A DNA stretch of 64,000 nucleotides, from positions 186,001 to 250,000 of IMG/VR virus record IMGVR_UViG_3300029258_002750. One strand, written 5' to 3'. The position numbers and the translations under genes are program-made. Shown here in pieces: positions 19,270 through 53,307 of this stretch (positions are counted from its first letter, which is position 1; every line of letters starts with the position of its first letter). Under the pieces are notes generated by a model. That model worked only from the letters and a program-made list of their open reading frames with translations, did no database searches and was not told where the DNA came from.

Positions 19270-22050
19270 GTGGCCCAACTCGAAATCCTCAGCCCAGGTG
19301 TCTACGGCTTCGAGAAGGAGCCGTCCCGTGCCCCCGAGGGCATCTCTCCCGCGAAGGCCGGGTTCGTCGGCTGGACCGACGAGGGTCCGAGCAATACGCC
19401 AGTCGAGGTTCGCTCGACCGTCGAGTTCGAGCGTGTCTTCGGACCGATCTCGTCGTTAGGTCTGGTCCCGATCGGGATCCAGGGCTTCTTCGGGAACGGT
19501 GGCCAGCGGGCCTACATCGTCCGCGTGGTCCCGTCCGACGCCATCTCGGCGTGGGCGGACATCGACCCGACGCCCGGTCCCACCAAGTGGACCTTCACCA
19601 TGAAGGGGGAGGGGACCTGGGGCAACGACACCCGGATCCACATCCGAGGGAACCGCAACTTCCTCGATCGGACGGCCGGTGCCGAGCAGTGGGAGAAGTT
19701 CGACCTGCTCGTCCTCCGTCCTTCGGAGTACGACGCGTCGATCCTCGTCTCCGAGGAGACCTACGAGGCGGTCCAGTTCACCGACCCGGACGCGGCCGAC
19801 TACGTCACCACCGTCCTGACCGATCCCCGGAAGCCGTCTCAGCTGGTGGAGATCACCGAGGGCGCGGGCGGCACGCCCAGCGGGCTGATCCCCTCCTACG
19901 AGGAGGACGAGGTGCTGGTGGCCGGTGGCTCGGTCAACGGCATCGACACCAACTTCTCCGGGACGCTCGCCCAGGGCGCCTGCCTGGACAACACGCTGCG
20001 GATCGTCGCGGCCGACGCCCAGGTGGACGACGAGGCGCAGACGCCGACACCGGCGATCGACGGGATCGTGACGACCTTCGCGATCACCCTGCCGACGACG
20101 CCGGTGCTCGACGGCAGCCTGCGGATGTTCTACGCCAAGGTCGGCGACCAGGTCGACAACCTCGGCAGTGGTCCGTTCGCGGTCGGCACGGTCAACGGCA
20201 TCGACACGGCCTTCCAGATCGCGGCCGGTGCGCTGACCGCTCCGGTCCACCGGGAGAACACCGTCTTCCGTATCCGCTACGCGGTACCGGCTGGCGGATC
20301 GCCGTGGGTGCCCATCGGCGCGGCCACGCCCGGCCAGATCTACGACCTCGCCTCCACGCCGATTCCAGGCGTCACCCCGTCCACTCCGGTTCACCCTGGC
20401 ACGCTGGCCATCGCGGTGACGACTGTGGACGACGGTGCCCAGGTCATCCTCGACGACGGCGCTGGGAACCTCATCAACCCGCTCGTCTTCCAGGGCGGCA
20501 CCGGGACCATCGACTACACCACCGGCGCCATGACCGGGCAGACGCTCGGCTCGCTCGGCGGCGGCCTCGCCGGTGGCTCCCCGGTGACGGTGACCTACGA
20601 TGAGTCGGACATCATCACCAAGGCGGCGGCCACCGACAACATGGCCCAGGCGGTGGCTCTCGCGGGCGCGATCGGCGCGGGCACGAACGCGATCGACCTG
20701 GTGGACAGCGTCACGGCGCCTACCCAGAGCGGCCTGATCGACTTCACGACCTCGACTCCGCCGCAGAGCGGCACCAACATCCTGGTGGACTACGTGCCGC
20801 TCGGGATCGTGAACGGCGACGTGGCCGGGGATCTGACCGAGCTGGGCGGTGTCGCGGGCGCGGCCGGGTCGGCCGACTACGTCACCGGCGCCGTGGCGCT
20901 CACCACGCTGCTGGCTCCGAGGGCAGCCACCACGATCGACGCCGACTACCAGTCGGGCCAGGTCGCGACCGACGACGGCCTCGGCAACCTGGTCGGGGAT
21001 GTGGACGCGGCCGGGACCAACACGATCGACTACGACACTGGCGCCTACGACATCACCTGGGACAGCGCACCCACGGCGGGCACCGACATCCTGGGCAACT
21101 ACACCGGCCTCGCGAGCGACGTCGAGTGGCAGATGTCCGGCGGCGTCAACGGCTCTGCCGTCACCCGCGCGGACATCTCGGCCGCCGCGCTCGAATCCAG
21201 CAAGCAGGGCATCTACGCCCTGGATCTGGTCGAGGAGCCGCTCAACGTCGTGGTGCCCGACTTCGAGGGTTCGGAGTTCGTCCAGTTCGACATGGTGCAG
21301 TTCGCCAAGAACCGGCCCGACCTGCGCTACCTGATCATGGGCTACGCCAACGGGACGACCGTGAGCGAGGCGATCAAGTACATCCAGGTGGACCAGGCGT
21401 GGGACGAGAAGATCGGGGCGATGTACTACCCCAACGTCTACTTCGTCAACCCGCTCACCGATCGGGTCGAGCTGGTGCCGATCACTCCGCTCGTGGCGGG
21501 CGTCTACGCACGCACGGCGAACACCAAGAACGTCGGGAAGGCTCCGGGCGGTGTCGAAGACGGCGCGCTCAACGCGGTTGGCGTCGTCGCCGCCGAGTTC
21601 GTGCTGGAGAAGTCGGACCGGGACAACCTCTACCAGTCGCGGATCAATCCGATCATCTCCAGCGACGCGACCGGGATCGCCGTCTGGGGAGTGCGCAGCC
21701 TCTCGCGCGAGACGCGCTGGCGCTACATCAACGCGCGCACGCTGCACAACTTCCTGATGTACGCGACCAGCCTGAACCTCCAGTGGGCGGTGTTCGAGAA
21801 CAACGGCCCGCCGCTCTGGGCGAAGATCGAGACCGCGCTGAAGGGCTACTACGGCAGCCTCTTCCGGCTCGGCTACTTCGCAGGCCAGAACGAGGACGAG
21901 GCGTTCTTCGTGACGTGCAACGCCACGAACAACAACGCCTCGACCGTGGCGGAGGGCAAGGCGATCATCGACATCGGATTCAACCCCGGCACCCCGGCGG
22001 AGTTCATCACCTTCACCCTCCAGCAGCCGGTCGGCACGCAGACCTCGTAG
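19270..22050 (+). CDS. Tail sheath protein with large inserted surface domains
   Basis: N-terminal LSPGVYGFE...GFVGWTDEGPSNTPVEV...EFERVFG. C-terminal RDNLYQSRINPI...VWGVRSL...RYINAR...PGTPAEFITF. Confidence 0.93.
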   Translation: MAQLEILSPGVYGFEKEPSRAPEGISPAKAGFVGWTDEGPSNTPVEVRSTVEFERVFGPISSLGLVPIGIQGFFGNGGQRAYIVRVVPSDAISAWADIDPTPGPTKWTFTMKGEGTWGNDTRIHIRGNRNFLDRTAGAEQWEKFDLLVLRPSEYDASILVSEETYEAVQFTDPDAADYVTTVLTDPRKPSQLVEITEGAGGTPSGLIPSYEEDEVLVAGGSVNGIDTNFSGTLAQGACLDNTLRIVAADAQVDDEAQTPTPAIDGIVTTFAITLPTTPVLDGSLRMFYAKVGDQVDNLGSGPFAVGTVNGIDTAFQIAAGALTAPVHRENTVFRIRYAVPAGGSPWVPIGAATPGQIYDLASTPIPGVTPSTPVHPGTLAIAVTTVDDGAQVILDDGAGNLINPLVFQGGTGTIDYTTGAMTGQTLGSLGGGLAGGSPVTVTYDESDIITKAAATDNMAQAVALAGAIGAGTNAIDLVDSVTAPTQSGLIDFTTSTPPQSGTNILVDYVPLGIVNGDVAGDLTELGGVAGAAGSADYVTGAVALTTLLAPRAATTIDADYQSGQVATDDGLGNLVGDVDAAGTNTIDYDTGAYDITWDSAPTAGTDILGNYTGLASDVEWQMSGGVNGSAVTRADISAAALESSKQGIYALDLVEEPLNVVVPDFEGSEFVQFDMVQFAKNRPDLRYLIMGYANGTTVSEAIKYIQVDQAWDEKIGAMYYPNVYFVNPLTDRVELVPITPLVAGVYARTANTKNVGKAPGGVEDGALNAVGVVAAEFVLEKSDRDNLYQSRINPIISSDATGIAVWGVRSLSRETRWRYINARTLHNFLMYATSLNLQWAVFENNGPPLWAKIETALKGYYGSLFRLGYFAGQNEDEAFFVTCNATNNNASTVAEGKAIIDIGFNPGTPAEFITFTLQQPVGTQTS

Positions 22051-22565: not shown

Positions 22566-22606
22566 CGTCGAGGTCAGCGCAGACCAGACACCAGAAAGAG
22601 GACGTG

Positions 22607-22915
22607 ATGAGCCACTTCGACAAGCTGGCGGGCCTGACCGAGCAGGAAGAGCAGGGCGATCAGGACGACGGCCGGAACCCGCTGCACGAGATGATGGGCA
22701 TGATGCCCCGCCGCTACCTCAACAAGCGCGACCTCCAGTACGCGCTCGAGGATGCGGCGACCACGTGCGATCGGATGTGGAAGGAGAAGAAGCGCTTCGC
22801 GAAGGGCGACGAGCTGGGAAAGATGAAGCCCAAGTACGACGCCCTCGTTTCCGCGCTCAAAGCCGCCGCAAAGGCGGCCGAGGCGTGCGCCGACGCCCAG
22901 GACGACAAGTACTAG
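22607..22915 (+). CDS. Hypothetical helical protein, candidate internal head protein
   Basis: ATG 22607 after AGAGGA. N-terminus MSHFDKLAGLTE. Confidence 0.65.
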   Translation: MSHFDKLAGLTEQEEQGDQDDGRNPLHEMMGMMPRRYLNKRDLQYALEDAATTCDRMWKEKKRFAKGDELGKMKPKYDALVSALKAAAKAAEACADAQDDKY

Positions 22916-22920
22916 GCGTC

Positions 22921-23751
22921 GTGAGTCTGTTCGAGCGGGTCGTTCCATCTGACGCCCGCCTTCTGCACGAGGGCATCTTCGATCCGCATATCCTGAAAGC
23001 GATCTTTCTGGGCGGCGGCATGGGATCCGGCAAATCGTGGACTGCCGGAACGATGTTCGGGAAGCTCGGCAGCCAGCTCGGCGGAGCCTTCGGGCTCAAG
23101 ACCCTGAGCGTGGATGAGATCTACGCTTGGCGCGTCAAGCAGAAGGGCCTCGATCTCAAGACGGCCTTCGAGGTGCCGACCGACAACCCGAAGTTCCCAT
23201 CGATCGGGAAGGAGCTGCACGACCGCTCGTGGTACACGATGATGAATCAGCGCGCGCACTTCGCGCGTGGGCGACTCGGCGTGATCGTCGATGGCACGGC
23301 CAAGAACCCCACCTACATCCTGAAAGGCAAGAAGGCGCTCGAAGACCTCGGCTACGACTGCTCGATGGTGATGGTGGTCACACCGATCGAAGTGGCTCGC
23401 GAGCGCAACCAGGCGCGCGGCCGGACCGTCCCGGATGCGGACGTGGTCGCCTCGCATCAGGCGGTCGCGAAGGCTGGTCAGACCTACAAGAAGAAGTTCG
23501 GCCATCGCTACTACGAGATCGAGAACAAGGGGACGTACGACACGGGCAGCGCCGAGTTTCGTACCGAGATCGAGCCGAAGATGCACCGGATGGCCTCGAA
23601 GATTCTCGCCAAACCGCTAGAGAACCCGAAGGGGAAGGCGTGGGTCGAGGGCCAACTGGCCGGAGCGCCTGAACACCTCAAGCGGAAGGTCTACTCCGGC
23701 CTGGGCATTCGGCCGAAGAAGAGGAAGCGGCGGAAGCTCAAGACGCGGTAG
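22921..23751 (+). CDS. P-loop kinase (Zeta-toxin/AAA_33-like)
   Basis: HEGIFDPHILKAIFLGGGMGSGKSW (Walker A), GVIVDGTA, VARERNQARGRTVP. GTG start at 22921. Confidence 0.8.
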   Translation: MSLFERVVPSDARLLHEGIFDPHILKAIFLGGGMGSGKSWTAGTMFGKLGSQLGGAFGLKTLSVDEIYAWRVKQKGLDLKTAFEVPTDNPKFPSIGKELHDRSWYTMMNQRAHFARGRLGVIVDGTAKNPTYILKGKKALEDLGYDCSMVMVVTPIEVARERNQARGRTVPDADVVASHQAVAKAGQTYKKKFGHRYYEIENKGTYDTGSAEFRTEIEPKMHRMASKILAKPLENPKGKAWVEGQLAGAPEHLKRKVYSGLGIRPKKRKRRKLKTR

Positions 23752-23760
23752 GATGGGCGC

Positions 23761-24288
23761 ATGGCCAGATCGGTGAACTCAGACCCGCTCTTGAGTCACA
23801 ACTTCGCGCTGCTCGACGTCCCCGTCGCTGGCGTCTTCCCCACCGCGTTCCCACTGAAGTCCGCCCAGTCCGCCATCAACAACGGGAGCTACATCGGCTT
23901 CCAGTCGATCTCGATCCCCGAGATGACGATGGACGTGAAGGACATCCGCGAGGGGAACTGGCCGTACGTGCACCGGGTGCCGCAGGGCTACGTTACCGGC
24001 GGCGACTGCACGCTCCGGTTCGCGGTCTTCAACACGAACCTTGATATGTACCTCTGGTTCATGCAGGTCGTCTGGGGCCGCGTCGCGCCCCGGCGGAGCT
24101 TCATCGTCGTGCAGACGAGGAACCAGAAGGTCATTCCACAGCGGATGCTCTGGATGCGGGACGCCATTCCCACTACGTGGAAGCCCGCGACCGACCTGGA
24201 CGCCTCGGGTTCCGAGGTCGTGATGGAGGAGCTGACTCTCTCCGTTCAGCGGGTCACGGTCCTGCCGCTTCCCGTGCCCCAGGTCTAG
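23761..24288 (+). CDS. Second gp19-like tail tube protein
   Basis: DPLLSHNF...GFQSISIPEM...REGN...AIPTTWKPATDLDASGSEVVMEELTL. Paralogue of 22080-22565. Confidence 0.85.
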   Translation: MARSVNSDPLLSHNFALLDVPVAGVFPTAFPLKSAQSAINNGSYIGFQSISIPEMTMDVKDIREGNWPYVHRVPQGYVTGGDCTLRFAVFNTNLDMYLWFMQVVWGRVAPRRSFIVVQTRNQKVIPQRMLWMRDAIPTTWKPATDLDASGSEVVMEELTLSVQRVTVLPLPVPQV

Positions 24289-24292
24289 GGGG

Positions 24293-24340
24293 TTGCGCCG
24301 TCCAGCTGCGTGAGGCAGAATGCCTCCTCAAGTGAGGAGG
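24293..24340 (+). promoter_or_regulatory. Promoter (TTGCGC-N17-CAGAAT) with perfect palindrome CCTCCTCA-AG-TGAGGAGG covering the RBS
   Basis: Inverted repeat at 24323-24340 whose right arm is the Shine-Dalgarno of the RHH gene. Confidence 0.6.
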
Positions 24341-24348
24341 TCTTCCTC

Positions 24349-24834
24349 ATGGAAGCCAGCTTGAAGCCCCGTCTCAACTTTGTCATTCCAGAGGACTTAG
24401 ACGACACGCTCGCGTCCTACTGCGAGGAGACCGGCCGCTCCCAGAGTGAGGTCATCCGCCAGGTCGTGCTGGAGTGGCTCGACGGGGACAGGCGCCTGCC
24501 CGCGCCCGCGCGTGTGCACCCGTCTGGTCGACGTACCAACATGCAGCTCTCCCACGTCCTCCGGGGCGCTCTGGAGGCCAAAATCAAGGAGGAGGGCCAC
24601 GGGACCATCTCCGCCGTGATCGAGGCTCTCCTGCGCTCCTACGTGGCCCACAGGGGCAACGGAGGGGACGGCACGACCATCGTTCGGGTCGCTCTCCCGA
24701 CCGGGGTCTACGACGAGCTGTTCGTCTTCTGCCAGCGTTGGGGATGGACCGTCGCAGACGGTCTCAAGGTGCTGGCCGAGAGTCCAGAGAGGTTCGAGCG
24801 CTTGGTGAGGTACGCGCTCGAGAAGGAGGCATAA
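24349..24834 (+). CDS. Tandem ribbon-helix-helix (CopG/Arc-like) DNA-binding protein
   Basis: RLNFVIPEDLDDTLASYCEETGRSQSEVIRQVV, RTNMQLSHVLRGALEAKIKEEGHGTISAVIEALL and a third VRVALPTGVYDEL unit. ATG 24349 follows GAGGAGG. Confidence 0.75.
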   Translation: MEASLKPRLNFVIPEDLDDTLASYCEETGRSQSEVIRQVVLEWLDGDRRLPAPARVHPSGRRTNMQLSHVLRGALEAKIKEEGHGTISAVIEALLRSYVAHRGNGGDGTTIVRVALPTGVYDELFVFCQRWGWTVADGLKVLAESPERFERLVRYALEKEA

Positions 24835-24894
24835 GTGCCAGGAATTGTTGATGTTCCGGGGGTAGAGGTGTTCGGCAAGGGCCGTGGGCGATGA
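24835..24894 (+). pseudogene. Stranded original 5' end of the tail chaperone gene (19-codon minigene MPGIVDVPGVEVFGKGRGR*)
   Basis: 17 of the first 18 aa match the N-terminus of the gene at 26240. Has an AAGGAGG RBS, abuts the RHH stop, and its TGA overlaps ATG 24891. Confidence 0.85.
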
Positions 24895-25226
24895 AGGACT
24901 ACGCCCGGGACGACAACGGCGACATCGTGCTCCGCGCCTACGAGATTCCCTATCGGCCGCAGTACGTGCTCACGTTCACGCCGGGCGAGTTCGGCCCGGA
25001 CGCTAGCTCGCTACCGTCTGGGGAGTGGGACCAGGACTACCCCGGCTTTCGCTTCCACCTGTCGCCCGAAGCGCTGGCGCTGGTCGCCGAGCAGGGCGCC
25101 AACCGAGATGACGGGTTCCAGCGGATCGAGGTCATCTGGGATGCCACGGACCCCGGTCCGGTGAAGCTCCGAGCGACGCAGGCTGTGACCGAGGAGCAGC
25201 TCGCTTCTTTGGGAGGGGGCGACTAA
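24891..25226 (+). CDS. Hypothetical protein (cassette cargo)
   Basis: 111-aa ORF, ATGA coupled to the minigene. No recognisable motif. Confidence 0.65.
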   Translation: MKDYARDDNGDIVLRAYEIPYRPQYVLTFTPGEFGPDASSLPSGEWDQDYPGFRFHLSPEALALVAEQGANRDDGFQRIEVIWDATDPGPVKLRATQAVTEEQLASLGGGD

Positions 25227-25236
25227 GTGCTACTAT
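25209..25236 (+). promoter_or_regulatory. Internal promoter for the nuclease gene (TTGGGA-N16, extended -10 TGCTACTAT)
   Basis: TGn-TACTAT at 25228-25236, GGAGGT RBS at 25251, ATG at 25260. Confidence 0.55.
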
Positions 25237-25259
25237 GTCTGCGGAAACGCGGAGGTAGT

Positions 25260-26255
25260 ATGGGACGCCCGAGGACCAACGTGTCTGCGGCGAAGCGTGC
25301 CGAGGTGCGCTGTCGATACAAGGCCGGAGCTACGCTGGATGAGGTCTCGGCTGCGACTGGGTTGTCCGTCTGGCTCGTCCGTCGCGAGCTGGGGCGCACG
25401 CGCCGTCATCCGGCACGCAAGCGGCATCTGTTCGCGGATGATCCGAGCGCGCGGGCCGAGATTGTCAGTCGCTACGAGGCCGGGGAGTCGGTCAACTGGT
25501 TGGCCGAGTGGTTCGAGTGCTCGGCGAGCCCGATCAAGCGCGTGCTGCTCGAAGAGGGTGTCGATGTTCGCGGACGAGACAGGTGTCGCGGCTTCACCTT
25601 CCGCGATCGGCTGGGTCGCGTGTTCTTCTTCCGATCTTCGTGGGAGGCGAAGACCGCCGCCTGGCTCGATGCGCGCAGGTTCAACTGGGACTACGAGGTC
25701 GAGCAGTTCGACGACTACCTGCCGGACTTCTGGATCTACAACAGCGGTGGCGAGATCGACTACTTGATCGAGGTCAAAGGCTGGCTCTCCCCGGAGGGTG
25801 CCGAGAAGATCGAGCGCTTTCGGGAGAGGCATTCAGAGATCAGATTGAAGCTGTGGCGCAAGGCCCAGCTGAAGAGGCGCGGGATCTTGGACCTACGACC
25901 GGAGACGCTAGTCGATCACAGGTTCCGCACGCGCATGAATCGGGCGGTGCGCAAGCAGATCATCAAGCTCTACGAGAGCGGCATGTCGGCGATCGAGGTT
26001 GGACGCGAGGTCGGGCGTGCGAAGTCGAGTGTGCTGCGTGTGCTCCACATCGCCGGTGTGGTTCGCGGTGTGTCCGAAGCCAAGCTGCTCAACTCCAGCT
26101 TCGCACCATCGAAGAGAAACAAAGCGGAACAGCTCTACAGGAAGGGGCTGTCGCTGAACGAGGTGTCAGAGAAGATCGGTGTTCCGTTGGGCACCGTCTA
26201 CGACGAGTTACGCAAGCGAGGCGTGGTCAGGAGGAAAGCGTGCCGGGGATCGTAG
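25260..26255 (+). CDS. PD-(D/E)xK endonuclease flanked by multiple HTH repeats (homing endonuclease-like)
   Basis: FRSSWEAKTAAWLD...WDYE...YLPDFWI...LIEVKGW nuclease core. Four HTH-like segments of the Y.xG.S..E(I/V) type. Confidence 0.8.
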   Translation: MGRPRTNVSAAKRAEVRCRYKAGATLDEVSAATGLSVWLVRRELGRTRRHPARKRHLFADDPSARAEIVSRYEAGESVNWLAEWFECSASPIKRVLLEEGVDVRGRDRCRGFTFRDRLGRVFFFRSSWEAKTAAWLDARRFNWDYEVEQFDDYLPDFWIYNSGGEIDYLIEVKGWLSPEGAEKIERFRERHSEIRLKLWRKAQLKRRGILDLRPETLVDHRFRTRMNRAVRKQIIKLYESGMSAIEVGREVGRAKSSVLRVLHIAGVVRGVSEAKLLNSSFAPSKRNKAEQLYRKGLSLNEVSEKIGVPLGTVYDELRKRGVVRRKACRGS

Positions 26256-27139
26256 ACGTACCGGGTGTTGAAGTATTTGGGCGTGGTAGGGGGCAGTACC
26301 AACTCCCCTGCGGTTACGTGGACGAGCAGGGCAAGGTCCACAAGACCATCGTCCTCCGTGAGATGACCGGCACGGAGGAAGACATCATGGACGATGACGA
26401 GCTGCCTGTTCACGAGCGGACAACCATGCTCCTCTCGGCCTGCTGCGAGAAGATCGGCAACGAGACCGATCCTGAGAAGATCAAGGCGATCATCGGTGAC
26501 GACCTGAAGGCGGGTCTGCCGATCACGTCGTCGGACCGGCTGGCGATGCGGATCTTCCTCCGCCGCTGCTCCTGCGGTGACGTCTACAAGTTCGAGCGGA
26601 CGTGCCCGCGCTGCGGCCACCTGAACAAGAACAAGCAGCTCGACCTGCGGACGATCGAGATGACCGAGGTCCCCGAGGATCGGGTGTCGAAGCGCCGCGT
26701 CGAGGTCGTGCTCCGCCGGTCCGGCCGGAAGGCGATCGTGCGCGTGCTGACGGCCAGCCACGAGGAGAAGCTCACGGGCCTGAGCCTGAACCAGAAGGAT
26801 CTGCGGTCCTACGCGATCCTCGCCAGGCTCGAGCAGCTCGAGGTCGAGACAGAAGTTCCTGGGGCTGACGGTCAGCCACCACAGAAGCAGAAGCAGATGA
26901 TCACGCTCGGCGATCCGAAGCGAGACCTGGATCTGGTGAAGGCGCTCCCGAAGGACGACCGGAACCATCTCCGCGAGGTCTACAACGCGATGGAGGCCGA
27001 CGTGGACACGAGCGTCCAGGTCAGCTGCCAGGGCCGCCTCTGCAACTGCGAGTTCGAGTTCCCGCTCGACCTGGGGCAGGCTTTTTTCTCGAACACGGGA
27101 GCCGAGCCTGTTACGGCCGAGGGGCTGAACTGGTTGTAG
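26240..27139 (+). CDS. Tail/baseplate assembly chaperone (eCIS-type LPCGYVD family, T4 gp26-like position)
   Basis: GTG 26240 after AGGAGG. YQLPCGYVDEQGKVHKTIVLREMTGTEED and CPRCG. Directly upstream of the tape measure. Confidence 0.75.
   Translation: MPGIVDVPGVEVFGRGRGQYQLPCGYVDEQGKVHKTIVLREMTGTEEDIMDDDELPVHERTTMLLSACCEKIGNETDPEKIKAIIGDDLKAGLPITSSDRLAMRIFLRRCSCGDVYKFERTCPRCGHLNKNKQLDLRTIEMTEVPEDRVSKRRVEVVLRRSGRKAIVRVLTASHEEKLTGLSLNQKDLRSYAILARLEQLEVETEVPGADGQPPQKQKQMITLGDPKRDLDLVKALPKDDRNHLREVYNAMEADVDTSVQVSCQGRLCNCEFEFPLDLGQAFFSNTGAEPVTAEGLNWL
27082..27088 (+). other. Candidate -1 programmed frameshift slippery site T TTT TTC
   Basis: In-frame XXXYYYZ heptamer near the end of the chaperone gene. 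The -1 frame is open from here to 27423. Confidence 0.65.
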
Positions 27140-27423: not shown

Positions 27424-30400
27424 GTGGAACTCTATAACCTCGGAATCGGCCTCACAGTTGTCGATCACGCGACGAAGCCGATCAAATCGGTTGACGCGGC
27501 GCTGGTGTCGTTGGCCTCGTCGACCGAGGCGGCGACGAAGGCGGCTGGGGGACTCGACCACGCGTTAGTCGGCGGGTCCGTCGCTCCGGCGATGGACGAG
27601 GCGGCCGAGGGTGGCGAGGATCTGACCATCAAGATCACCGAGACAGGGCTGGCCTTCAACAGGTTTACCGCGTCGGCCGGTCTCCTCAGCAAGGCGCTGG
27701 GCCTGGTTGGTACCGACCTTCAGGGGTTGCCCCGGTGGATGAGCCAGGTCCGGGATGAGCAGGGCCGGTTCACCTCGGTGACGTGGGAGAACATGGACGC
27801 GCTCGAGCGCGTTGCGCTCGGGGCCGGGAAGACGGTCGGCTCATTCAGGGAGCTTCTCAGTACGGCCACGAAGGTCCATCCCGCGTTCTCCGCACTCGCC
27901 CGGGAGCTGAAGGAGAGCGGCCAGGCGATCTCTGGTTTCGTGCAGGACGTCGAGAACCTGGAATTCCTCGGCCGGGAACGGGACACGTTCCTCGAACTGG
28001 AGGACTCGTCACGGAAGATGGCGGCAGGATTCGGCGAGGGGCGCGAGGCCGCGTTCGAGCTTCGCAGCGACATGCTTCAGCTGGTCGGTACGACACAGTT
28101 CAGCATTGGCGAAGTCACCCGGATGACCCAGGGCTTGGCGGCGGCCGGTGTCTCTCTCACCGAGCTGTCCGAGGACCAGCAGCAGGCGTTCATCGCGCTC
28201 AACGACCTATATGGTGTGTCTGGTCAGGAGATCGCGAAGGCCGATTCCGCTATGCGGACGTTCGGTGGCTCGATGGTCGGGGCGCTGGACGATGCCACCA
28301 AGTTCCAGTCGGCGTTCCGAATGCCGGGGATGATGGAGCAGCTCCCGGGCGTGATCGAGGGCGCAATGGACGCCACAGTCTCGTTCGGCAAGGCCGTGGT
28401 CGGCTCCGGCGCTGGGATCGTGAAGAGCGTCTCCCAGACGGCCGGTGTCTACGCCAAGGCGTTCGGCAAGACGATGGCCGAGGCTGTCCAGGCCGCCCAG
28501 CGCACGTTCGAGCGCTTCGCCAGGGCGTCGCAGACGCAGCGGCGCGTGTTCCTCGGTCTCAGCGACAGCTTCGACCCGCTCCAGATGGCAATGATGGAGA
28601 CCGGGATCTCGCTCGACCAGAGCGGCGCACTGATGCGTCAGGCGCAGACGGACACGCTCGGGTTCGTCACATCCCTGCGCGGTCACATCGACTCGATCCC
28701 GTCCCAGTTCCTCCGTGACAGGTTCATGGAGCAGCTCCGTGACGAGCTGCCCGCAGAACTCATGCGAGCGATCGAGCACACCGAGGACTACAACGCGATG
28801 GTGCGCGAGCAGGAGGAAGCCGAACGGCGTCGCGCGCTCGGGACTGCTGCCGGAGTCCAGTCGTTCGACGAGCTGACGTCTGGAATGCTCGACACGACGA
28901 AGGAACTACAGAAGATGTGGTTCAACGTCAAGCAGCTCGGCATCGCGTTCCTCACGCAGACCGGACTGATCGACGTGCTGAAGGACGCCTTCGGTGGGGC
29001 GAAGGACACGCTCGCCAGTCTCAGCTTGACGATCAAGGACTTCATCGAGAGCGAGCGGATGCGCGAGTGGGGTCAGGCCCTTGCGCCGATCCTGGGTACT
29101 GTCGGCAAAGGCGTCCTGCTCCTGGGGACAGCGTTCGGCACGCTGCTGGGCGTGGCTGGTGGTGCTACGGGGGCCATCGGCAAGCTGAATGCGATCGGCA
29201 AGTTGTTCGGCCGGTTCCCCAAGCTCGCCGGGGCGTTGCGAGCGATTGGCCCCAGGCTCCTCAAGATCCTGGGACCGATCGGGCTGATCGTCTCCGGGAT
29301 CGACGCGGTGATGGACGGGATGGATCGCATGAGCAAGGTGCTCTCCGATCCCGAGGCGTCCGGGCTGGACATCTTCCAAGGCGCTGTGGAGACGGCCATC
29401 GTCACTCTCGGTACCTTCCTCGACAACATCCTGCTTGGCATCCCCAGCTGGCTTGCTGAGAAGTTCTTCCCGGAGCTAGGCGACATCTGGGAGCACGGCC
29501 TGAGCGACATCATTGGGGGGATCGGACTCAGCTTCAAGGTCTCGTTCTTCGAGATCAAGAGCCTCGGCATCACCGTGGGCAAGTTCCTGCTCGAGCACAT
29601 GGGCGGCATGTGGGTGTCGGTCGCGCAGATCGCTCTCAGCTCGTTCGAGAAGATCTCCAACGCGATCGTGGCGATCAAAGGTGTCGGACAGTTCGTTGTC
29701 GATGCCTTCAGTGGAAGCTGGGAGAAGGGCTGGGCGGCGATCAAGGTGGCCGGGCTCACTGCCGCGAAGGCCATCTCCGACATGCTGCTGGGAGAAAACG
29801 GCATCCTTAGCGGAGCGCTCACCGCTGTTGAGAAGCTATTGGACTACGCATACAACTACGGACCACGCGGGGCGTCGGACATGGCGCTGGAGGCGCTTAC
29901 CGCTATCCGTGGCGTGCGGTCCAGTGCCGTAGGCTTCGGTAGGGACATGGCCGCGTCCCTGACGGCCGCCGCCGACGAGCAAGCCAGAATATCCGGGCTG
30001 GGCGCCGACTGGGAGACCACGCAGCAGCGAATTGCGGCCGAGCAGAAGGCCGTGACGTCGGGTGTGGCCGGTATGAAGGAGGGTCTAGACGACGCCCACC
30101 AGTCGGCGCTGAAGTTCATGGACGACCAGAAGGTCATCGCCGAAACGGAAGTGGCCAATTCGCGCGCCGAGTTGGAGCTGAACAGGCGGAAGCGCAAGGA
30201 GAACAACGAGAACTTCGGCGAGGCCGCCGAGTTCCGCCGCCGGGCGAAGAGCCACACGGAGCAGGCTCTCCGAGAGCTGGCCGAGAAGGGTACCGCTCTC
30301 AGCGCGTCCGGTATGCGCGAGGCCGAGCGCCGCCTCAGGTCGCACATGGAGAAGTCCCTGAGCGACATCGCATCGTCGGTCGCCAAGGGCGAGATCGAGC

Positions 30401-30669
30401 TGGACGAGGGGATCACGAGATTTGCCGAGGCCAAGCGCCGTGGCCTGGAAGCTGCCATGAAGGGCAAGGCCCCGGGCGAGGTCGCGGATAGCGCGGGCAA
30501 GGGCGCGGGCGCGGGCGGCATCCCAGCTGAGGCGTGGGCCGCGCTGGTTAGGAAGCTCGAGGGGCGCGGCGGCGGCGATCAGAAGGTGCGCGTCGTGTTC
30601 CGGGGCGTCGGCAACGGCATCGATGAGCACATGGCTCGGAAGGCGTCTGTTGAGGAGGCGCAGATGTAA
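27424..30669 (+). CDS. Tape measure protein
   Basis: 1081 aa, helical A/G/L-rich with a hydrophobic middle. LGIGLTVVDHATKPIK N-terminus. Follows the chaperone genes. Confidence 0.85.
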   Translation: MELYNLGIGLTVVDHATKPIKSVDAALVSLASSTEAATKAAGGLDHALVGGSVAPAMDEAAEGGEDLTIKITETGLAFNRFTASAGLLSKALGLVGTDLQGLPRWMSQVRDEQGRFTSVTWENMDALERVALGAGKTVGSFRELLSTATKVHPAFSALARELKESGQAISGFVQDVENLEFLGRERDTFLELEDSSRKMAAGFGEGREAAFELRSDMLQLVGTTQFSIGEVTRMTQGLAAAGVSLTELSEDQQQAFIALNDLYGVSGQEIAKADSAMRTFGGSMVGALDDATKFQSAFRMPGMMEQLPGVIEGAMDATVSFGKAVVGSGAGIVKSVSQTAGVYAKAFGKTMAEAVQAAQRTFERFARASQTQRRVFLGLSDSFDPLQMAMMETGISLDQSGALMRQAQTDTLGFVTSLRGHIDSIPSQFLRDRFMEQLRDELPAELMRAIEHTEDYNAMVREQEEAERRRALGTAAGVQSFDELTSGMLDTTKELQKMWFNVKQLGIAFLTQTGLIDVLKDAFGGAKDTLASLSLTIKDFIESERMREWGQALAPILGTVGKGVLLLGTAFGTLLGVAGGATGAIGKLNAIGKLFGRFPKLAGALRAIGPRLLKILGPIGLIVSGIDAVMDGMDRMSKVLSDPEASGLDIFQGAVETAIVTLGTFLDNILLGIPSWLAEKFFPELGDIWEHGLSDIIGGIGLSFKVSFFEIKSLGITVGKFLLEHMGGMWVSVAQIALSSFEKISNAIVAIKGVGQFVVDAFSGSWEKGWAAIKVAGLTAAKAISDMLLGENGILSGALTAVEKLLDYAYNYGPRGASDMALEALTAIRGVRSSAVGFGRDMAASLTAAADEQARISGLGADWETTQQRIAAEQKAVTSGVAGMKEGLDDAHQSALKFMDDQKVIAETEVANSRAELELNRRKRKENNENFGEAAEFRRRAKSHTEQALRELAEKGTALSASGMREAERRLRSHMEKSLSDIASSVAKGEIELDEGITRFAEAKRRGLEAAMKGKAPGEVADSAGKGAGAGGIPAEAWAALVRKLEGRGGGDQKVRVVFRGVGNGIDEHMARKASVEEAQM

Positions 30670-50088: not shown

Positions 50089-50930
50089 GCAGTCTCGGCA
50101 GACCCGGCTACAGCACGCTCGGCACTCCAGTCGATCCTGCTTCGCCGTCTGGCATCCTGATCGACCCGACCACCGAGATCGGCGGATCTCCCGCGCTCAA
50201 CGATGTCCTCAAGGGCGACGGCCTGGGCGGCTGGACCGTTGGCCCGGCGCCCGGCGCTGGCGGCATCACCTACAAAGGCACGTGGGACGCTTCTACGAAT
50301 ACTCCCGCGCTCGCTTCTGGTGTTGGCACCCCGGGCGAATACTACATCGTCGCGGTCGGCGGAACCACGACCCTCGACGGTGTCAGCCTGTGGACCGTGG
50401 GCGACTGGGCTATCTTCAACGGGACCGCCTGGCAGAAGATCGACAACGACACCAGGCCGGACTACGGACCGCTTGCTGCCGATCCGGCAGGGACTTCGCC
50501 GGACGGCTCCAAGTACTACAACACCGCGCTCGACATGGAGATGCGCTACGACGCCACCCGCGCGAAGTGGGTCTCTGTTGAGGCCAAGGTGTGCACCTTC
50601 TCGAACTCGGGCTTCTTCGGAACAGCGGCCGGGGCTTACTACCGTGGTATCGGGGCCGTCACCGGGGCAGGCGCTACGGGGTACCTCTTGCCGCACAACG
50701 CAACTGTGGTGGCAATGGGCTACACCAGGACGGACACGGATGCGGCAACCTTCGAGGTGATGGACGATGGGGCCTCGGTCGCTACACTGGCGTCCTCGGC
50801 CGCGTCTGGCAAGAGCACCGCACTGAACGTGGACATCGCCTCCGACAGCGTGCTGTCCCTGCGGAACCAGTCCGGGGGGAACACCACCTCCGGGGTCCAG
50901 GCGTGGGTGAAGGTCCGGTGGAGGGCGTAG
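50085..50930 (+). CDS. Fibre/decoration protein
   Basis: YKGTWDASTNTPALASGVGTPGEYYIVAVGG...GDWAIFNGTAWQKIDN fibre module. C-terminal module duplicated in the next gene. Confidence 0.7.
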   Translation: MSSLGRPGYSTLGTPVDPASPSGILIDPTTEIGGSPALNDVLKGDGLGGWTVGPAPGAGGITYKGTWDASTNTPALASGVGTPGEYYIVAVGGTTTLDGVSLWTVGDWAIFNGTAWQKIDNDTRPDYGPLAADPAGTSPDGSKYYNTALDMEMRYDATRAKWVSVEAKVCTFSNSGFFGTAAGAYYRGIGAVTGAGATGYLLPHNATVVAMGYTRTDTDAATFEVMDDGASVATLASSAASGKSTALNVDIASDSVLSLRNQSGGNTTSGVQAWVKVRWRA

Positions 50931-51150
50931 CGTGACGACCATCATCGCGAAGAACCAGACCGCAGGCGACCTCGCGCTCACGCGCTTGGTTGCGCCCGAT
51001 GCCAAGATCCCGGCGAGCGGCCAGGCCCAGCTGACCGACTGGAACGCGCCCTACGAGATCACGATCGACCCGGAGCTGGTCGCCTACATCAACGCCGACC
51101 AGGTGCTCCTGAACATCGACGGCGTGGACCTGACCAAGGCGGAGAGCCTG
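50460..51150 (+). repeat. Diverged tandem duplication, copy A (C-terminal module + junction + MTTIIAKNQ module)
   Basis: Protein-level match to 52615-53307, including the stop/start junction GGAGGG(C/T)GTAGCG. Confidence 0.85.
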
Positions 51151-53085
51151 ACGGCCGCCGAGCAGAAGGTCGCGGGCACGAACATCGGCAACCTGGTCGA
51201 GGTTGTGGATGTTGGCGGAAGTGTCGCCGGACTACCGGCGCTGGACGGCTCCTTGCTCACCAATCTGGCGGCCTCCGGCGCCTACCGGCTTCCCCCGAAC
51301 CTCGTGCTGGTGGATCCAGCCCAGCCAGCCCTGGTCGGGGTTCGATACCAGACATGGGCCGCCGCCGACACCTACGTGGCAACGCAAACACCGTCCTCCA
51401 CGAACAGGTGGGGCATCCAGATCACCGGCACGAACAGCGAGAACATCGTCGTGCGCCCGTGGGTGGTCATCGTGGGGATGCCAGAAGGGTCCACGAGGCT
51501 CACCGGCAACCTGACCTCGACGGTCAGCTTCAACGGCACAGGCGACCCCACCATCGGGCTCGTGCGCGAGTGCGAAGTCGCCAGTCTCGCTTTCTCGGCC
51601 GCGAACGAGTGGACCATCTTCCACAACTGCAAGCTGACGGGAGGAACTCCCACCGGAGGTTGGTGCCGACTCGACCATTGCCGCGTGGATGGCGGCAACT
51701 ACTTCAACATGGATCTGATGCAGATCTACCGCAGCATCGTCGATGGTTCCGGCGGCGGCTTCCCGGACGTGGTCCAGGCGCACTGGACCAGGTTCGCGTC
51801 GAACTACACCCTGCGGGGCGGCAACTTCAACTTCTGCGAGATCTTCATCGGCGGCACCACAACCTACCTGGCCGGGAGCTACACGCTCTGGAACTGCGTC
51901 AGCTACGCTGCGCTGAACGCGGCCAGCGCCGGGCATCGGATCAGGATTCTCAACACCATCCTGGTGGGAAACCCCACGATCACCCTCAACCCCGGTGACC
52001 TGACCACGCGCTCGGTCGTGGGGGACTTCGCCGTCTCTAACACAGGCGGCAACTGGACCAACGAGGGCGACTTCTACGACAACACGGCCTCCGGCCTCGC
52101 GGCGGATGAGGTCCAGGCGGCCATCGACGAGATCGTGGCCGGTCTGCCCACTGGCGATGTCGTCGGGCCGGGAAGCTCGACTACCAACAACGTGCCCCAG
52201 TTTGCGGACACGTCCGGCAAGCTCCTGAAGGATGGGCTGACGCCTGGCGGCGCAAATGGTCTGGCCACGCTCAACTCGGGCAGCAAGGTACCGCTGATCC
52301 AGCTCCCAGCTTCGCAGACGCCAGCTGTGGACACGATTCCCGTCTCTGGCTCGGTTCAGCCCACGATCAACCCAGGTTGGCTCCCGGGCGCGTCCGAGAG
52401 CGCGCAGGGCGCTATCGAGATCGCCACCCAGACCGAGACCGACACCGGCACGGACAATACGCGTGCTGTTACTCCGCTCAAGCTAGCTGGTCGAACGGCT
52501 ACAGAAACGCGCGCTGGTATTGCCGAGCTTGCGACTCAGGCCGAGACGGATACCGGTACAGACGATGCCAGGATCGTCACCCCGCTCAAGCTCAAGGGAA
52601 GGGTGCCGCGCACGGACTTCGGCGCATCGGCCAGTGACCCAGCCGGGTCTCCTGTTGACGGGGACATCTACTACAACACGGCGCTCGACAAGGAAATGCG
52701 ATACGACGCGACGAGAGCTAAGTGGCTTTCGGTTGCCGAGGCCGCCTACCAGTTCGGCCGCAACGGAGACACGCCTAGCGGCTCGTTCTATCGCGGTATC
52801 AACGGGCTTGCGTTTTCTGCTACGCGGGGGCTGACTATGCCGCATGACGGAACAATTGTCGCCCTGGGCTATCACCGGGATGATTCAGATGCTGCAACCT
52901 TTGCGATTAGAAACAATACGACAGCAAGCGTCGTTGTGACAGTCGCCTCGACCGCTAACAAGGGAGTTGACTCGTCACTGAACGCTAACTTCTCGGCCCA
53001 GGACGTTCTCGCTCCCGGCAACAATACGGGCTCTAATACGACCTCCAATGTAATCGGCTGGTTCAAGGTCAAATGGAGGGTGTAG
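50932..53085 (+). CDS. Tail fibre protein
   Basis: Beta-helix-like middle, two A(S/T)E...G..E.ATQ.ETDTGTD....VTPLKL fibre repeats. Confidence 0.75.
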   Translation: MTTIIAKNQTAGDLALTRLVAPDAKIPASGQAQLTDWNAPYEITIDPELVAYINADQVLLNIDGVDLTKAESLTAAEQKVAGTNIGNLVEVVDVGGSVAGLPALDGSLLTNLAASGAYRLPPNLVLVDPAQPALVGVRYQTWAAADTYVATQTPSSTNRWGIQITGTNSENIVVRPWVVIVGMPEGSTRLTGNLTSTVSFNGTGDPTIGLVRECEVASLAFSAANEWTIFHNCKLTGGTPTGGWCRLDHCRVDGGNYFNMDLMQIYRSIVDGSGGGFPDVVQAHWTRFASNYTLRGGNFNFCEIFIGGTTTYLAGSYTLWNCVSYAALNAASAGHRIRILNTILVGNPTITLNPGDLTTRSVVGDFAVSNTGGNWTNEGDFYDNTASGLAADEVQAAIDEIVAGLPTGDVVGPGSSTTNNVPQFADTSGKLLKDGLTPGGANGLATLNSGSKVPLIQLPASQTPAVDTIPVSGSVQPTINPGWLPGASESAQGAIEIATQTETDTGTDNTRAVTPLKLAGRTATETRAGIAELATQAETDTGTDDARIVTPLKLKGRVPRTDFGASASDPAGSPVDGDIYYNTALDKEMRYDATRAKWLSVAEAAYQFGRNGDTPSGSFYRGINGLAFSATRGLTMPHDGTIVALGYHRDDSDAATFAIRNNTTASVVVTVASTANKGVDSSLNANFSAQDVLAPGNNTGSNTTSNVIGWFKVKWRV

Positions 53086-53307
53086 CGTATGACTACGATC
53101 ATCGCTAAGAATCAGACGGCCGGTGACCTGTTGCTGACATTGCTGTCAGTACCAGACACTGTGATTCCAGCCTCCGGCCAAGTCCAGTTGACGGATTGGA
53201 ACACAGTCACAGAAATTCAAAACGATCCCGAACTGCTTGCTTACATTAACAGCGATCAGGTGCTGCTGAACATCGACGGCGAGGACCAGACCAAGGCGCA
53301 GAGTCTT
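52615..53307 (+). repeat. Diverged tandem duplication, copy B (low GC)
   Basis: See copy A. About 50-57% GC by manual line counts. Confidence 0.85.

Follow-up and report, generated by a model that had tools for sequence, protein, structure and literature searches.

The region examined lies within a 64,000-nt stretch of viral DNA (positions 186,001 to 250,000 of IMG/VR record IMGVR_UViG_3300029258_002750), which is referred to here as the window. At this locus a ribbon-helix-helix (RHH) gene is followed by a 19-codon stub, an ORF encoding 111 aa (ORF111), a gene for a putative homing endonuclease and a tail gene (Table 1). Related loci are designated by L numbers and related proteins by P numbers.

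Table 1. Features of the locus, numbered from the first nucleotide of the window.
Position	Strand	Feature	Observations
24310-24834	+	RHH gene, 174 aa; upstream flank and left homology arm	Pfam RHH_1, E 3.5e-10; 87% identical to L003, where its stop codon is followed directly by the tail-gene start
24823-24829	+	Native Shine-Dalgarno sequence of the tail gene	AAGGAGG, 5 nt before the stub GTG
24835-24894	+	Stub: stranded native 5' end of the tail gene	Start codon, 17 native codons, one junction codon and stop (TGA, 24892-24894); 7/51 nt differences from L003, 5 of 17 codons differ from the L023 gene start; absent as a separate copy in L003/L004
24886-24889	.	Left junction, GGGC	Insert is 24890-26294 (1405 bp) if GGGC is assigned to the left flank; blastn of the window against L003 ends at 24889 and resumes at 26229
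24891-25226	+	ORF111, conserved passenger gene	ATG overlaps the stub TGA as ATGA (24891)
25227-25259	+	33-nt leader of the nuclease gene	In-frame GTG directly after TAA; TG-n-TACTAT at 25228-25236; GGAGG at 25251-25255; homologous leader in L009, directly after the RHH stop codon
25260-26255	+	Putative homing endonuclease, 331 aa	ATG 25260, TAG 26253-26255; two N-terminal HTH modules, PD-(D/E)xK core (E129 at 25644-25646, P155-D156 at 25722-25727, E171-V172-K173 at 25770-25778), two C-terminal HTH modules
26230-26234	+	Replacement Shine-Dalgarno sequence (GGAGG), inside the 3' end of the nuclease gene	5 nt before the new start; same GGAGGAAAGC-GTG arrangement in L009, remnant in L023, where the nuclease is deleted
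26240-26293	+	Replacement (foreign, differently spelled) codons 1-18 of the tail gene	First 16 nt overlap the nuclease ORF; 14/51 nt differences from L003, 14 of 17 codons differ from L023
26291-26294	.	Right junction, GGGC	Native-type sequence resumes here at the latest and after codon 16 at the earliest; codons 17-20 (AGG GGG CAG TAC) equal L003 and belong to the ambiguity zone
26240-27139	+	Target gene, 299-aa tail assembly / baseplate-hub-like protein between tube 2/RHH and the tape measure gene	Pfam T4_baseplate 24.3 bits (cut-off 24.5); PHROG 150 baseplate hub; present at this position in the related loci whose contig reaches it

The stub encodes MPGIVDVPGVEVFGKGRGR and the tail gene, which also starts with GTG, begins with MPGIVDVPGVEVFGRGRGQY. 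Codons 1, 8 and 18 were identical in the two copies, whereas the other 15 of 18 differed, 14 synonymously and one by a K/R replacement (AAG/CGT). In total there were 20 nt differences in 57, and the longest in-register identical run was 5 nt. Both copies end in GGGC and diverge after it. These results confirmed the observation made in the original prediction, namely that the tail gene is preceded by a nuclease gene lying between two differently spelled copies of its 5' end.

To determine if this difference was more than chance, synonymous change was compared along the gene. Relative to the closest uninterrupted relative, it was concentrated in codons 2-18, with 11 of 16 aa-identical codons changed compared to 39 of 253 in the rest of the gene (Fisher p = 7e-6); relative to L023 the corresponding values were 13/16 and 23/84 (p = 8e-5). 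The arrangement is not an assembly artefact, since it was found in six assembly records from five samples (L001/L002, L007, L012 and L027).

The original prediction would have been refuted if relatives lacking ORF111 and the nuclease had still carried both peptide copies. This was not the case; L003/L004/L013 had a single peptide copy and an uninterrupted junction between the RHH gene and the tail gene, at the same nucleotide and with flanks 84-87% identical. Empty and occupied alleles therefore exist in relatives about 87% identical in DNA. The reverse was observed at the sheath/tube 1 site, where L003 and L023 are occupied and the window is empty. Comparison with the uninterrupted allele showed that the stub is the native copy and that the downstream copy is the odd one. 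The whole insert, comprising ORF111, the nuclease and the 18 codons, is foreign: ORF111 was only 65% identical to that of L023, while flanking proteins were 84-95% identical, and the nuclease was 71% identical to that of L009. The "recoding" is therefore an orthologous 5' end from a distant lineage carried inside the cassette, rather than a special rewrite; the distance between the stub and the new copy (18/51 nt) was within the range seen between distant lineages for this very conserved peptide (9-21/51). For the window alone, selection for dissimilarity is not demonstrated. No close relative was found in isolate phage records.

Analysis of the nuclease gave Pfam matches to HTH_38, HTH_7 and HTH_58, but the protein did not reach any Pfam nuclease threshold; it had no Phage_endo_I (PF05367) hit and only a weak match to DUF1064 (18.3 bits, cut-off 24.7). 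Homologues at 32-35% identity did pass the PF05367 threshold (P0010, 39.8 bits; P0009, 34.3 bits; cut-off 29.1), so the relationship to the T7 endonuclease I family is indirect. Residues E129, D156 and K173, the predicted catalytic residues, were invariant across six relatives, and position 171 was E or D. The core of the AF2 model had a pLDDT of 81-92, and a Foldseek search with the whole multi-domain model returned T7 endonuclease I chains at a probability of 0.93-0.97, although these matches were weak (E about 0.1, low TM). PHROG hits included resolvase families. No chain of the characterised PD-(D/E)xK homing endonuclease I-Ssp6803I, which is intron-encoded, appeared among the PDB sequence hits or the 50 best matches listed by the fold search. 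The dN/dS was 0.22 against L009, and the family had 255 representatives at E<=1e-30.

ORF111 had no Pfam, PHROG, Atlas or fold match, and its dN/dS was about 0.29. Homologues were located at the same junction in L020/L016 and L023-L025, fused in frame to short stubs, and in another context in L026. In contrast to the original prediction, which assigned the nuclease its own extended -10 promoter, a consensus scan of 24200-26600 found no sigma-70-type promoter; the TG-n-TACTAT motif does exist and has a counterpart (TG-n-TACATT) in L009, but it is not a motif that the scan tests.

To determine if homologues also sit between differently spelled duplicates, the positions of related nucleases were examined. 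In L003 a stub encoding MARAAS is fused to the nuclease, and both the stub and the RBS region are near-identical to the uninterrupted tube 1 start of the window; all six following codons of the new copy differ synonymously and the next eight are identical (6/6 versus 28/149, p = 8e-5). The pattern recurred in L017, L023, L010, L028, L030, L032 and L045, and before tube 2 in L044, with stubs of 4-7 codons followed by a differently spelled new start. The family thus occupies the first codons of three different tail genes across very different phages, and 10 of 149 top family members begin with a tube-like MAR[AST]. Group I introns (Rfam RF00028, 62-88 bits) without ORFs were found directly downstream of the new start in L010, L028/L029, L030 and L032, interrupting the tube gene about 4 codons beyond the stub boundary. 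No intron was detected in L003, L017, L023 or L009, and no Rfam family reached the gathering score in the window, where the nuclease ORF is separate from the target ORF. The cassette has a deeper history than its flanks, since dS between L003 and L023 was 0.95 for the nuclease compared to 0.42 for the adjacent tube 1. Across ten duplicates, 52 of 65 synonymous-eligible codons differed (binomial p = 0.006 against a saturation level of 0.65); this excess depends on the assumed null (p = 0.048 at 0.70), and the duplicates are not fully independent.

Other lineages showed decay states. L023 retains a 24-nt remnant of the nuclease 3' end in front of the tail gene, the L020 junction reads like that of the window with the nuclease removed, and the L017 nuclease lacks the helix that carries the catalytic Glu. 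In other cases the stub is shortened and fused to ORF111. The functional 5' end in L023 is native-like despite the nuclease remnant upstream, which requires a further recombination event to explain.

Taken together, these data are best explained by a free-standing homing-endonuclease cassette lodged 55 nt inside the 5' end of a conserved tail gene, a reading that we consider likely. In this view, the mobile block (about 24890-26294) carries ORF111, the nuclease gene and, at its 3' end, a new ribosome-binding site, a start codon and the first 18 codons of the target gene. These codons come from a distantly related phage and encode the same conserved peptide, but their synonymous sites are saturated. 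The target gene would be rebuilt as a chimera with foreign codons 1-18 (1-16 at the least) and native sequence from codon 19 at the latest, whereas the native ribosome-binding site, start codon and 18 codons would remain upstream and feed ribosomes into the cassette through the stop/start overlap. The nuclease would cut the uninterrupted allele near codon 18/19, where both junctions coincide, and the break would be repaired from an occupied genome, with RHH plus the stub as the left homology arm and codons 19 onward as the right arm, so that everything between is copied in. Insertion would split the recognition site, and the replacement codons, which share no run longer than 5 nt with the stub, could therefore neither rebuild it nor act as a direct repeat that would delete the cassette; in the intron-bearing loci, the intron in the same few codons would add a second disruption of the site. 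The stub retains the complete native sequence up to codon 18, and self-immunity would therefore require the recognition site to extend past the junction. The lineages with a deleted nuclease or a trimmed stub would represent the usual decay phase of homing endonuclease genes.

The interpretation in the original prediction, that this is a homing element which enters an essential gene without splicing and supplies a replacement N-terminus, was partly supported, with the homing reading itself largely supported. The sequence analysis itself established the empty and occupied alleles, the foreign origin of the block, the conservation that makes the nuclease look functional, the same architecture at other sites, the adjacent introns and separate history, the decay states and the degree of difference between the copies. 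By contrast, endonuclease activity and its specificity, cleavage of the empty allele, homing, expression, promoter function, immunity of the cassette to its own nuclease, resistance to deletion, essentiality of the target gene and any adaptive value of the recoding are inferred; resistance of the occupied allele, for example, is inferred only from the coincidence of both junctions at GGGC and from the altered codons next to the right junction. The nuclease family does behave like homing endonucleases in its presence/absence polymorphism between close relatives, repeated occupation of gene 5' ends, decay states and adjacency to group I introns, and donor flanking sequence (foreign codons 1-18) adjoins the nuclease, as in co-conversion. 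However, at this locus the stub is followed by ORF111 rather than by the nuclease, and in L009 the nuclease sits at the same junction, directly after the RHH stop codon, with no stub and no ORF111. The cassette is therefore composite, and the duplication cannot be assigned to the nuclease alone.

It remains possible that the homing cassette is real but that the different spelling has no function, being simply the orthologous 5' end of the donor, copied during a transfer between distant phages and then inherited with the cassette, without selection for nuclease immunity or repeat stability. The foreign nature of the whole insert (about 65-71% aa identity) and the inter-lineage range of the stub-to-new-copy distance are consistent with this view, as is the divergence of the new copies at the same rate as the nuclease gene (L003 versus L023: nuclease 73% nt identity, flanks 88-89%), and the same reading was given for C-terminal duplications in fungal mitochondria (PMC3630166). 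The pooled proportion of changed codons, however, is above the level of roughly 0.65 seen between distant naive alleles, and pS for the stub versus the new copy was 1.02, compared to 0.51-0.60 for whole genes between distant lineages. Stubs of only 5-6 codons are also matched by almost fully changed copies, including Ser and Arg codon-family switches, and since identical copies would be lost by deletion some filtering is hard to avoid. We regard as unlikely a two-step origin, in which an ORF111-type gene first created the stub and the new start and the nuclease arrived later at the stop/start junction (TAA|GTG) between ORF111 and the tail gene. This scenario is suggested by the stubs fused to ORF111 homologues without an intact nuclease in L020/L016 and L023-L025, by the L009 arrangement, by the nuclease leader starting directly after a stop codon in the window, and by a 7-nt direct repeat, TAAGTGC (24832-24838 and 25224-25230), that brackets the stub plus ORF111. 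The L023 remnant and the L020 junction nevertheless indicate that those lineages once had the nuclease, at the tube-gene sites the nuclease itself follows the stub with no passenger, and ORF111 has no detectable mobility function.

A one-off illegitimate insertion (a moron), in which the nuclease serves the phage or acts against competitors, for example as a junction resolvase or an exclusion nuclease, appears very unlikely. Although the core appears related to T7 endonuclease I, a Holliday-junction resolvase, this reading is opposed by the four flanking, putatively sequence-specific HTH-type modules, the presence/absence polymorphism at the same nucleotide position in close relatives, the occupation of three tail genes, the pairing with ORF-less group I introns at the same spot in four loci, and the decay states. 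Least probable of all is in situ tandem duplication of the gene start followed by accelerated synonymous divergence of one copy. The near-identical peptides and shared GGGC are compatible with such an event, but it would need 14 or more substitutions in 51 nt while the rest of the gene changed at 15% of aa-identical codons relative to L003, the 1.35 kb between the copies is itself foreign, and the closest relatives have a single copy.

The closest precedent is provided by mobile endonuclease ORFs (mORFs) in fungal mitochondria (Allomyces macrogynus atp6; Glomus atp6, atp9, cox2 and nad3; PMC3630166), where an endonuclease ORF lies inside a conserved gene without an intron or intein and brings a foreign copy of the gene end that becomes the expressed one, leaving the native end stranded. 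There, too, the native end is close to that of sister taxa (91-98% nt) and the inserted one is far (64-81% nt), with nearly identical protein. The present case is the mirror image, in that the 5' end is replaced together with translation signals, and the stub keeps the ribosome-binding site and start codon, which would be used to translate the cassette. It is also found in a phage, includes a passenger gene, and encodes a predicted PD-(D/E)xK nuclease of the T7 endonuclease I type with HTH modules rather than LAGLIDADG or GIY-YIG; it is thus an analogue and not a member by descent. Free-standing homing endonuclease genes of phages, such as the T4 seg and mob genes (PMC2988022; PMC10448857), likewise lie next to a conserved essential-type gene, are present or absent between close relatives, sit at a boundary of sequence exchange and show co-conversion of flanking donor sequence, but these classical cases lie between genes, whereas here the insertion point is inside the coding sequence and the element carries the replaced gene start. 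No phage case of this form was found in the literature searched, although this does not prove that none exists.

The intron-bearing relatives resemble collaborative homing, in which a free-standing endonuclease gene lies beside an ORF-less group I intron (T3/T7-like phages and cyanophage S-PM2 psbA, PMC10448857; F-CphI, PMC6083498), but their nuclease gene is additionally bracketed by a stub and a new start, which is not known to be part of the described cases. In engineered home-and-rescue (HomeR) and cleave-and-rescue gene drives (PMC7968924; PMC10592828), a nuclease gene is placed in an essential gene together with a recoded portion that restores function, cannot be cut and has little homology to the original; those are synthetic, use Cas9, sit in animals or plants and were recoded by design, whereas here the arrangement is natural and the different spelling comes from a foreign orthologue. 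The translational bypass of T4 gene 60, linked to the mobA endonuclease gene (bioRxiv 10.1101/2022.08.31.505936), is another way in which a mobile endonuclease-linked insert inside a phage coding sequence is made harmless without RNA or protein splicing, by ribosome hopping over a 50-nt gap rather than by supplying the interrupted gene end again.

A broader reading, which we hold only tentatively, is that a large family of T7-endonuclease-I-like homing endonucleases has this stub-plus-rescue architecture as its normal mode of life, taking over the ribosome-binding site, start codon and first codons of the target gene for its own expression and carrying a replacement start that is kept as different as possible from the native one. 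This would be a natural home-and-rescue drive operating at three or more phage tail genes, and its intron-bearing and intron-free forms could be stages on the path between free-standing and intron-borne endonuclease genes. The side-by-side occurrence of the same nuclease with and without a group I intron, at the same few codons, bears on how mobile introns arise. Selfish nuclease genes are thought to survive inside essential genes only by hiding in self-splicing introns or inteins, or by staying between genes; here the element enters the coding sequence and brings a spare copy of the part it displaces. It gives a natural system with which engineered rescue-type drives can be compared, including how different the rescue copy must be and how such elements decay. 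The coincidence of both junctions also predicts the cleavage site of an uncharacterised nuclease family with long, modular HTH recognition, which may be useful as a source of rare-cutting enzymes. Finally, the arrangement explains short orphan ORFs and odd N-terminal "fusions" beside phage tail genes, such as nuclease ORFs that begin with the MARAA(S/T) of the tube protein, and warns against calling truncated tube genes where an intron is present.

The sequence of the target region was first examined to determine if the duplication described in the original prediction was present, and it was found to be real and arranged as described. The first copy is a short ORF, hereafter the stub, which encodes MPGIVDVPGVEVFGKGRGR followed by a stop codon and lies directly after the stop codon of a ribbon-helix-helix (RHH) gene and 5 nt after AAGGAGG. 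The second copy forms the start of the tail gene, which begins MPGIVDVPGVEVFGRGRGQY. Fifteen of the first 18 codons differ between the copies, 14 synonymously and one by a K/R change; the longest in-register identity is 5 nt, and both copies end in GGGC. Between them lie ORF111 and the putative nuclease ORF, and the latter contains the new GGAGG.

All long ORFs in the window are on the + strand and GC is about 64%. The gene order is sheath, tube 1, a zeta-toxin/AAA_33-like kinase, tube 2, RHH (CopG/Arc-like), the cassette, the target tail gene and a tape-measure-like gene. The tail module is therefore interrupted by two non-structural genes, the kinase and the RHH gene, both of which are conserved in relatives down to about 45-68% identity. 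The target gene matched Pfam T4_baseplate just under threshold and PHROG 150, baseplate hub. The window was identical to a 275-kb IMG/VR contig. DNA and protein searches of isolate phage records (INPHARED) gave no match, and a scan of species-representative genomes gave only 23-30% identical relatives of the tail gene, from which no host could be inferred.

Coordinates of the features in the window and, where a prefix is given, in other contigs.
Feature	Coordinates	Description
Sheath gene	19270-22050	
Zeta-toxin/AAA_33-like kinase gene	22574-23751	Between the two tube genes
Uninterrupted counterpart of L003:5165-6190	22900-23751	
RHH gene	24310-24834	174 aa, between tube 2 and the tail gene
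TAAGTGC repeat, first copy	24832-24838	Stop codon plus GTG
Stub, start codon	24835	GTG; 19-codon ORF
End of the left blastn match to L003	24889	
ORF111	24891-25226	ATG overlaps the TGA of the stub
TAA between ORF111 and the nuclease leader	25224-25226	
TAAGTGC repeat, second copy	25224-25230	Stop codon plus GTG
Putative nuclease ORF	25260-26255	331 aa; last 16 nt overlap the new gene start
Start of the right blastn match to L003	26229	
Target tail gene, start codon	26240	GTG; 299 aa
Tape-measure-like gene	27424-30669	1081 aa; compared with L003:9185-12412
Loss of DNA similarity to L003	between 29475 and 30473	
Adjacent gene pair	50932-53085 and 53089-54051 (also 50514-50580 versus 52669-52735)	717 and 320 aa, no Pfam match
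Insert in the L003 kinase gene	L003:5165-6190	About 1 kb, reads as an intein
HNH_3 endonuclease ORF in that insert	L003:5358-6068	Minus strand
Tube-site nuclease of L017	L017:587-1426	
Two members of the nuclease family in L044	L044:1-411 and L044:2501-3403	
Loci at which gene callers truncated the tube gene	L010:2049-2390; L028:3844-4200; L030:3884-4300; L032:3893-4260	122-143 aa, or a wrong start

An uninterrupted allele, the search for which had been proposed as a check beforehand, was found in the relatives L003/L004 (also L013). These carry a tail gene whose protein is 90% identical to that of the window, and in them the RHH stop codon is followed at once by the gene start. In a blastn comparison with L003, similarity ran at 87% up to the left junction and resumed at the right one; the window therefore has 1405 extra bases bounded by GGGC. 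Over codons 2-18 the stub differed from the L003 start at 7 of 51 nt and the new copy at 14, whereas stub and new copy differed from each other at 18. Within the gene, synonymous change relative to L003 affected 11 of 16 aa-identical codons in positions 2-18, but only 39 of 253 afterwards (p = 7e-6); against L023, a relative with a different arrangement at this junction, the figures were 13/16 versus 23/84 (p = 8e-5). The occupied arrangement recurred in six assembly records from five samples.

To determine where the different spelling came from, the gene start was compared between lineages. The N-terminal peptide is conserved in lineages whose tail-gene proteins are only 55-68% identical, while their third codon positions vary freely; distances between such lineages over codons 2-18 were 9-21 nt, so that 18 is typical of a distant orthologue. 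The rest of the insert was equally foreign. ORF111 was 65% identical to its counterpart in L023, whose flanking proteins are 84-95% identical to those of the window, and the only close relative of the nuclease was 71% identical. The insert is therefore a block from an unsampled, distant member of the same phage group, and it includes the first 18 codons of that donor. Foreign-specific spellings stopped after codon 16 and codons 17-20 equalled L003; the switch back to native sequence thus lies at the same place as the left junction. Two DNA-pattern scans of viral contigs for further empty alleles or the donor lineage returned only contigs already known, and a profile scan of viral contigs with ORF111 likewise returned only the window's own contigs.

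Analysis of the putative nuclease with Pfam identified HTH modules at both ends and only a weak DUF1064 hit in the middle. An alignment with five relatives showed that the predicted catalytic residues E129, D156 and K173 were invariant, together with P155, V172 and G174, and that position 171 was E or D, the pattern of a PD-(D/E)xK site. Two relatives, P0010 and P0009 (32-35% identical), passed the Pfam threshold for Phage_endo_I. The AF2 model had a well-predicted core (pLDDT 81-92 for residues about 121-210), and Foldseek listed T7 endonuclease I, NucS/EndoMS and VRR_NUC among weak hits, in addition to paired-type HTH DNA-binding domains. A PDB sequence search with the nuclease returned only an HTH protein (2lvs) and noise. 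The dN/dS value against L009, a relative that carries the nuclease without ORF111, was 0.22. A profile search found 255 representative clusters at E<=1e-30 and 5603 at E<=1e-10, although the looser count also includes proteins matched mainly through their repeated HTH or Myb-like modules. No second copy of the family was found in the window. The original prediction had also given the nuclease its own extended -10 promoter, but a consensus scan found no sigma-70-type promoter.

The same architecture was found at the sheath/tube 1 junction, where L003 and L023 carry a 299-aa paralogue and the window has none. The L003 ORF begins MARAAS, the first six codons of tube 1; its 18 nt are identical to the uninterrupted tube 1 start of the window, and the upstream RBS region matches closely. 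Tube 1 then restarts with all six following codons changed synonymously, including Ser TCC to AGT, whereas the next eight codons are identical to the window (6/6 versus 28/149, p = 8e-5). The tube site of a further relative, L017, is similar (MARAAAT, 5/6 codons changed), but its nuclease lacks the segment containing the conserved FRSSWE helix with the catalytic Glu; it retains PDF and EVK and is probably an inactivated copy. Further members were fetched from unrelated contigs (L010, L028/L029, L030, L032-34 and L045), all of which lie between the sheath and tube genes. Each has a tube stub upstream, which is fused in frame, closed by a stop a few codons later, or eroded as in L032, and each has a new ribosome-binding site and start at the nuclease 3' end. 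The contig L044 carries two members in the same tail module, one before tube 1 and the other before a tube 2-like gene, and the ORF of the latter begins VARSIT, copying the MARSIS start of that gene. Ten of the 149 best family representatives start with MAR[AST].

Over ten duplicates, 52 of 65 synonymous-eligible codons differed (p = 0.006 against a level of 0.65, p = 0.048 against 0.70). Between L003 and L023 the nuclease had a dS of 0.95 and the adjacent tube 1 a dS of 0.42; the new copies differed at 4 of 6 codons, while the stubs differed at one nucleotide. The new start therefore shares the history of the cassette and not that of the host gene.

In L010, L028/L029, L030 and L032, Rfam identified a complete group I intron (62-88 bits) starting 8-11 codons into the tube gene, about 4 codons beyond the stub boundary. 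Gene callers had truncated the tube genes in L010, L028, L030 and L032; the short first exon lies inside or just after the nuclease ORF. In L010, splicing is predicted from the sequence to occur after codon 11. No intron was found in the window, L003, L017, L023 or L009. This layout is the one called collaborative homing (summarised in PMC10448857), and it places the likely cleavage site of those nucleases in the same few codons.

Four other states of the RHH/tail-gene junction were observed. The junction was empty in L003/4/13, L014, L015, L017, L018 and L022. In L008/L009 only the nuclease was present, directly after the RHH stop codon, with the same 33-nt leader and the same 16-nt overlap with the tail gene as in the window. 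In L020/L016 a stub of 7-8 codons was fused in frame to an ORF111 homologue without a nuclease; the L020 fusion equals the window arrangement minus 38 nt. In L023-L025 a stub of about 4 codons was fused to ORF111 and followed by 77 nt, of which the last 24 nt match the nuclease 3' end, and then by a native-like gene start. The L009 arrangement equals the window minus the segment between two TAAGTGC repeats, a 7-nt direct repeat that brackets exactly the stub plus ORF111; deletion between the repeats would give the arrangement seen in L009. In addition, ORF111 and the nuclease ORF of the window are in the same reading frame, separated by a single TAA and 11 sense codons that begin with GTG, and the same in-frame GTG-plus-11-codon leader precedes the nuclease in L009. 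These arrangements look like decay or rearrangement products of one composite cassette, although the data did not decide the order of events between the window-type, L009-type and L020/L023-type arrangements.

ORF111 also occurred in an unrelated context with an N-terminal extension (locus L026) and is under purifying selection (dN/dS about 0.29). No recognisable family or fold was identified: nothing was found in Pfam or PHROG, the ESM Atlas gave only low scores, and an AF2 model (pLDDT 70.6) had no Foldseek match in PDB or BFVD at E<0.6. A programmed frameshift joining the stub to ORF111 was considered but rejected, since there is no slippery sequence and the ATGA overlap is sufficient for coupling.

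The comparative data established the insertion point, the foreign origin of the block, the chimeric nature of the target gene, the retention of the native translation signals upstream, the recurrence of the layout across the family, its link with introns and the apparent decay states. The mechanism itself is inferred from sequence: the nuclease would cut empty alleles near codon 18/19, repair would copy the block with RHH plus the stub and codons 19 onward as homology arms, the split site plus the altered codons would protect the carrier, and the lack of any shared run longer than 5 nt would stabilise the insert. Because the stub preserves the native sequence up to codon 18, self-protection would require a recognition site that crosses the junction. 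Stubs of 5-6 codons are too short to matter for repeat deletion, yet they are also paired with changed copies; for those sites, site disruption or mere foreign origin is therefore more likely than recombination avoidance. The original interpretation, a homing element that supplies a replacement N-terminus and is immune to its own nuclease and to deletion because the duplicate is recoded, was thus supported only in part. The homing reading is well supported by comparative evidence, although no step has been shown biochemically, whereas the "recoding" should be read as a foreign orthologous gene start that is part of the mobile unit, possibly filtered for dissimilarity. The more interesting result is that this is a family habit rather than a single oddity.

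The closest precedent is the fungal mitochondrial mORF, in which an endonuclease ORF brings a foreign C-terminal gene end and strands the native one; the native copy is close to sister taxa and the inserted copy is distant, with the protein conserved (PMC3630166). The phage case is the mirror image at the 5' end, adds the takeover of translation signals and uses another nuclease class. Phage free-standing endonuclease genes and collaborative homing are well known (PMC2988022, PMC10448857, PMC6083498), but literature searches found no description of a phage element that enters a coding sequence and supplies the displaced start. Engineered home-and-rescue and cleave-and-rescue drives use the same logic by design (PMC7968924, PMC10592828).

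Other features were observed in the window and in L003. The P-loop of the L003 kinase gene is split by an insert that reads as an intein (Pfam Intein_splicing 35.6 bits, cut-off 35.8); an HNH_3 endonuclease ORF lies on the opposite strand inside it, and the plus-strand frame stays open across the whole insert. The 50.9/53.1 kb gene pair of the window was considered as another case of a stub with a replacement start but was rejected. The two genes share an ordinary N-terminal domain of about 85 aa, starting with the same 14 residues at about 70% nt identity, which looks like ordinary paralogy, perhaps of fibre-like proteins. Finally, the tape-measure-like protein was only 56% identical between the window and L003, whereas the tail gene immediately upstream was 90% identical, which marks a sharp mosaic boundary a short distance downstream of the cassette.
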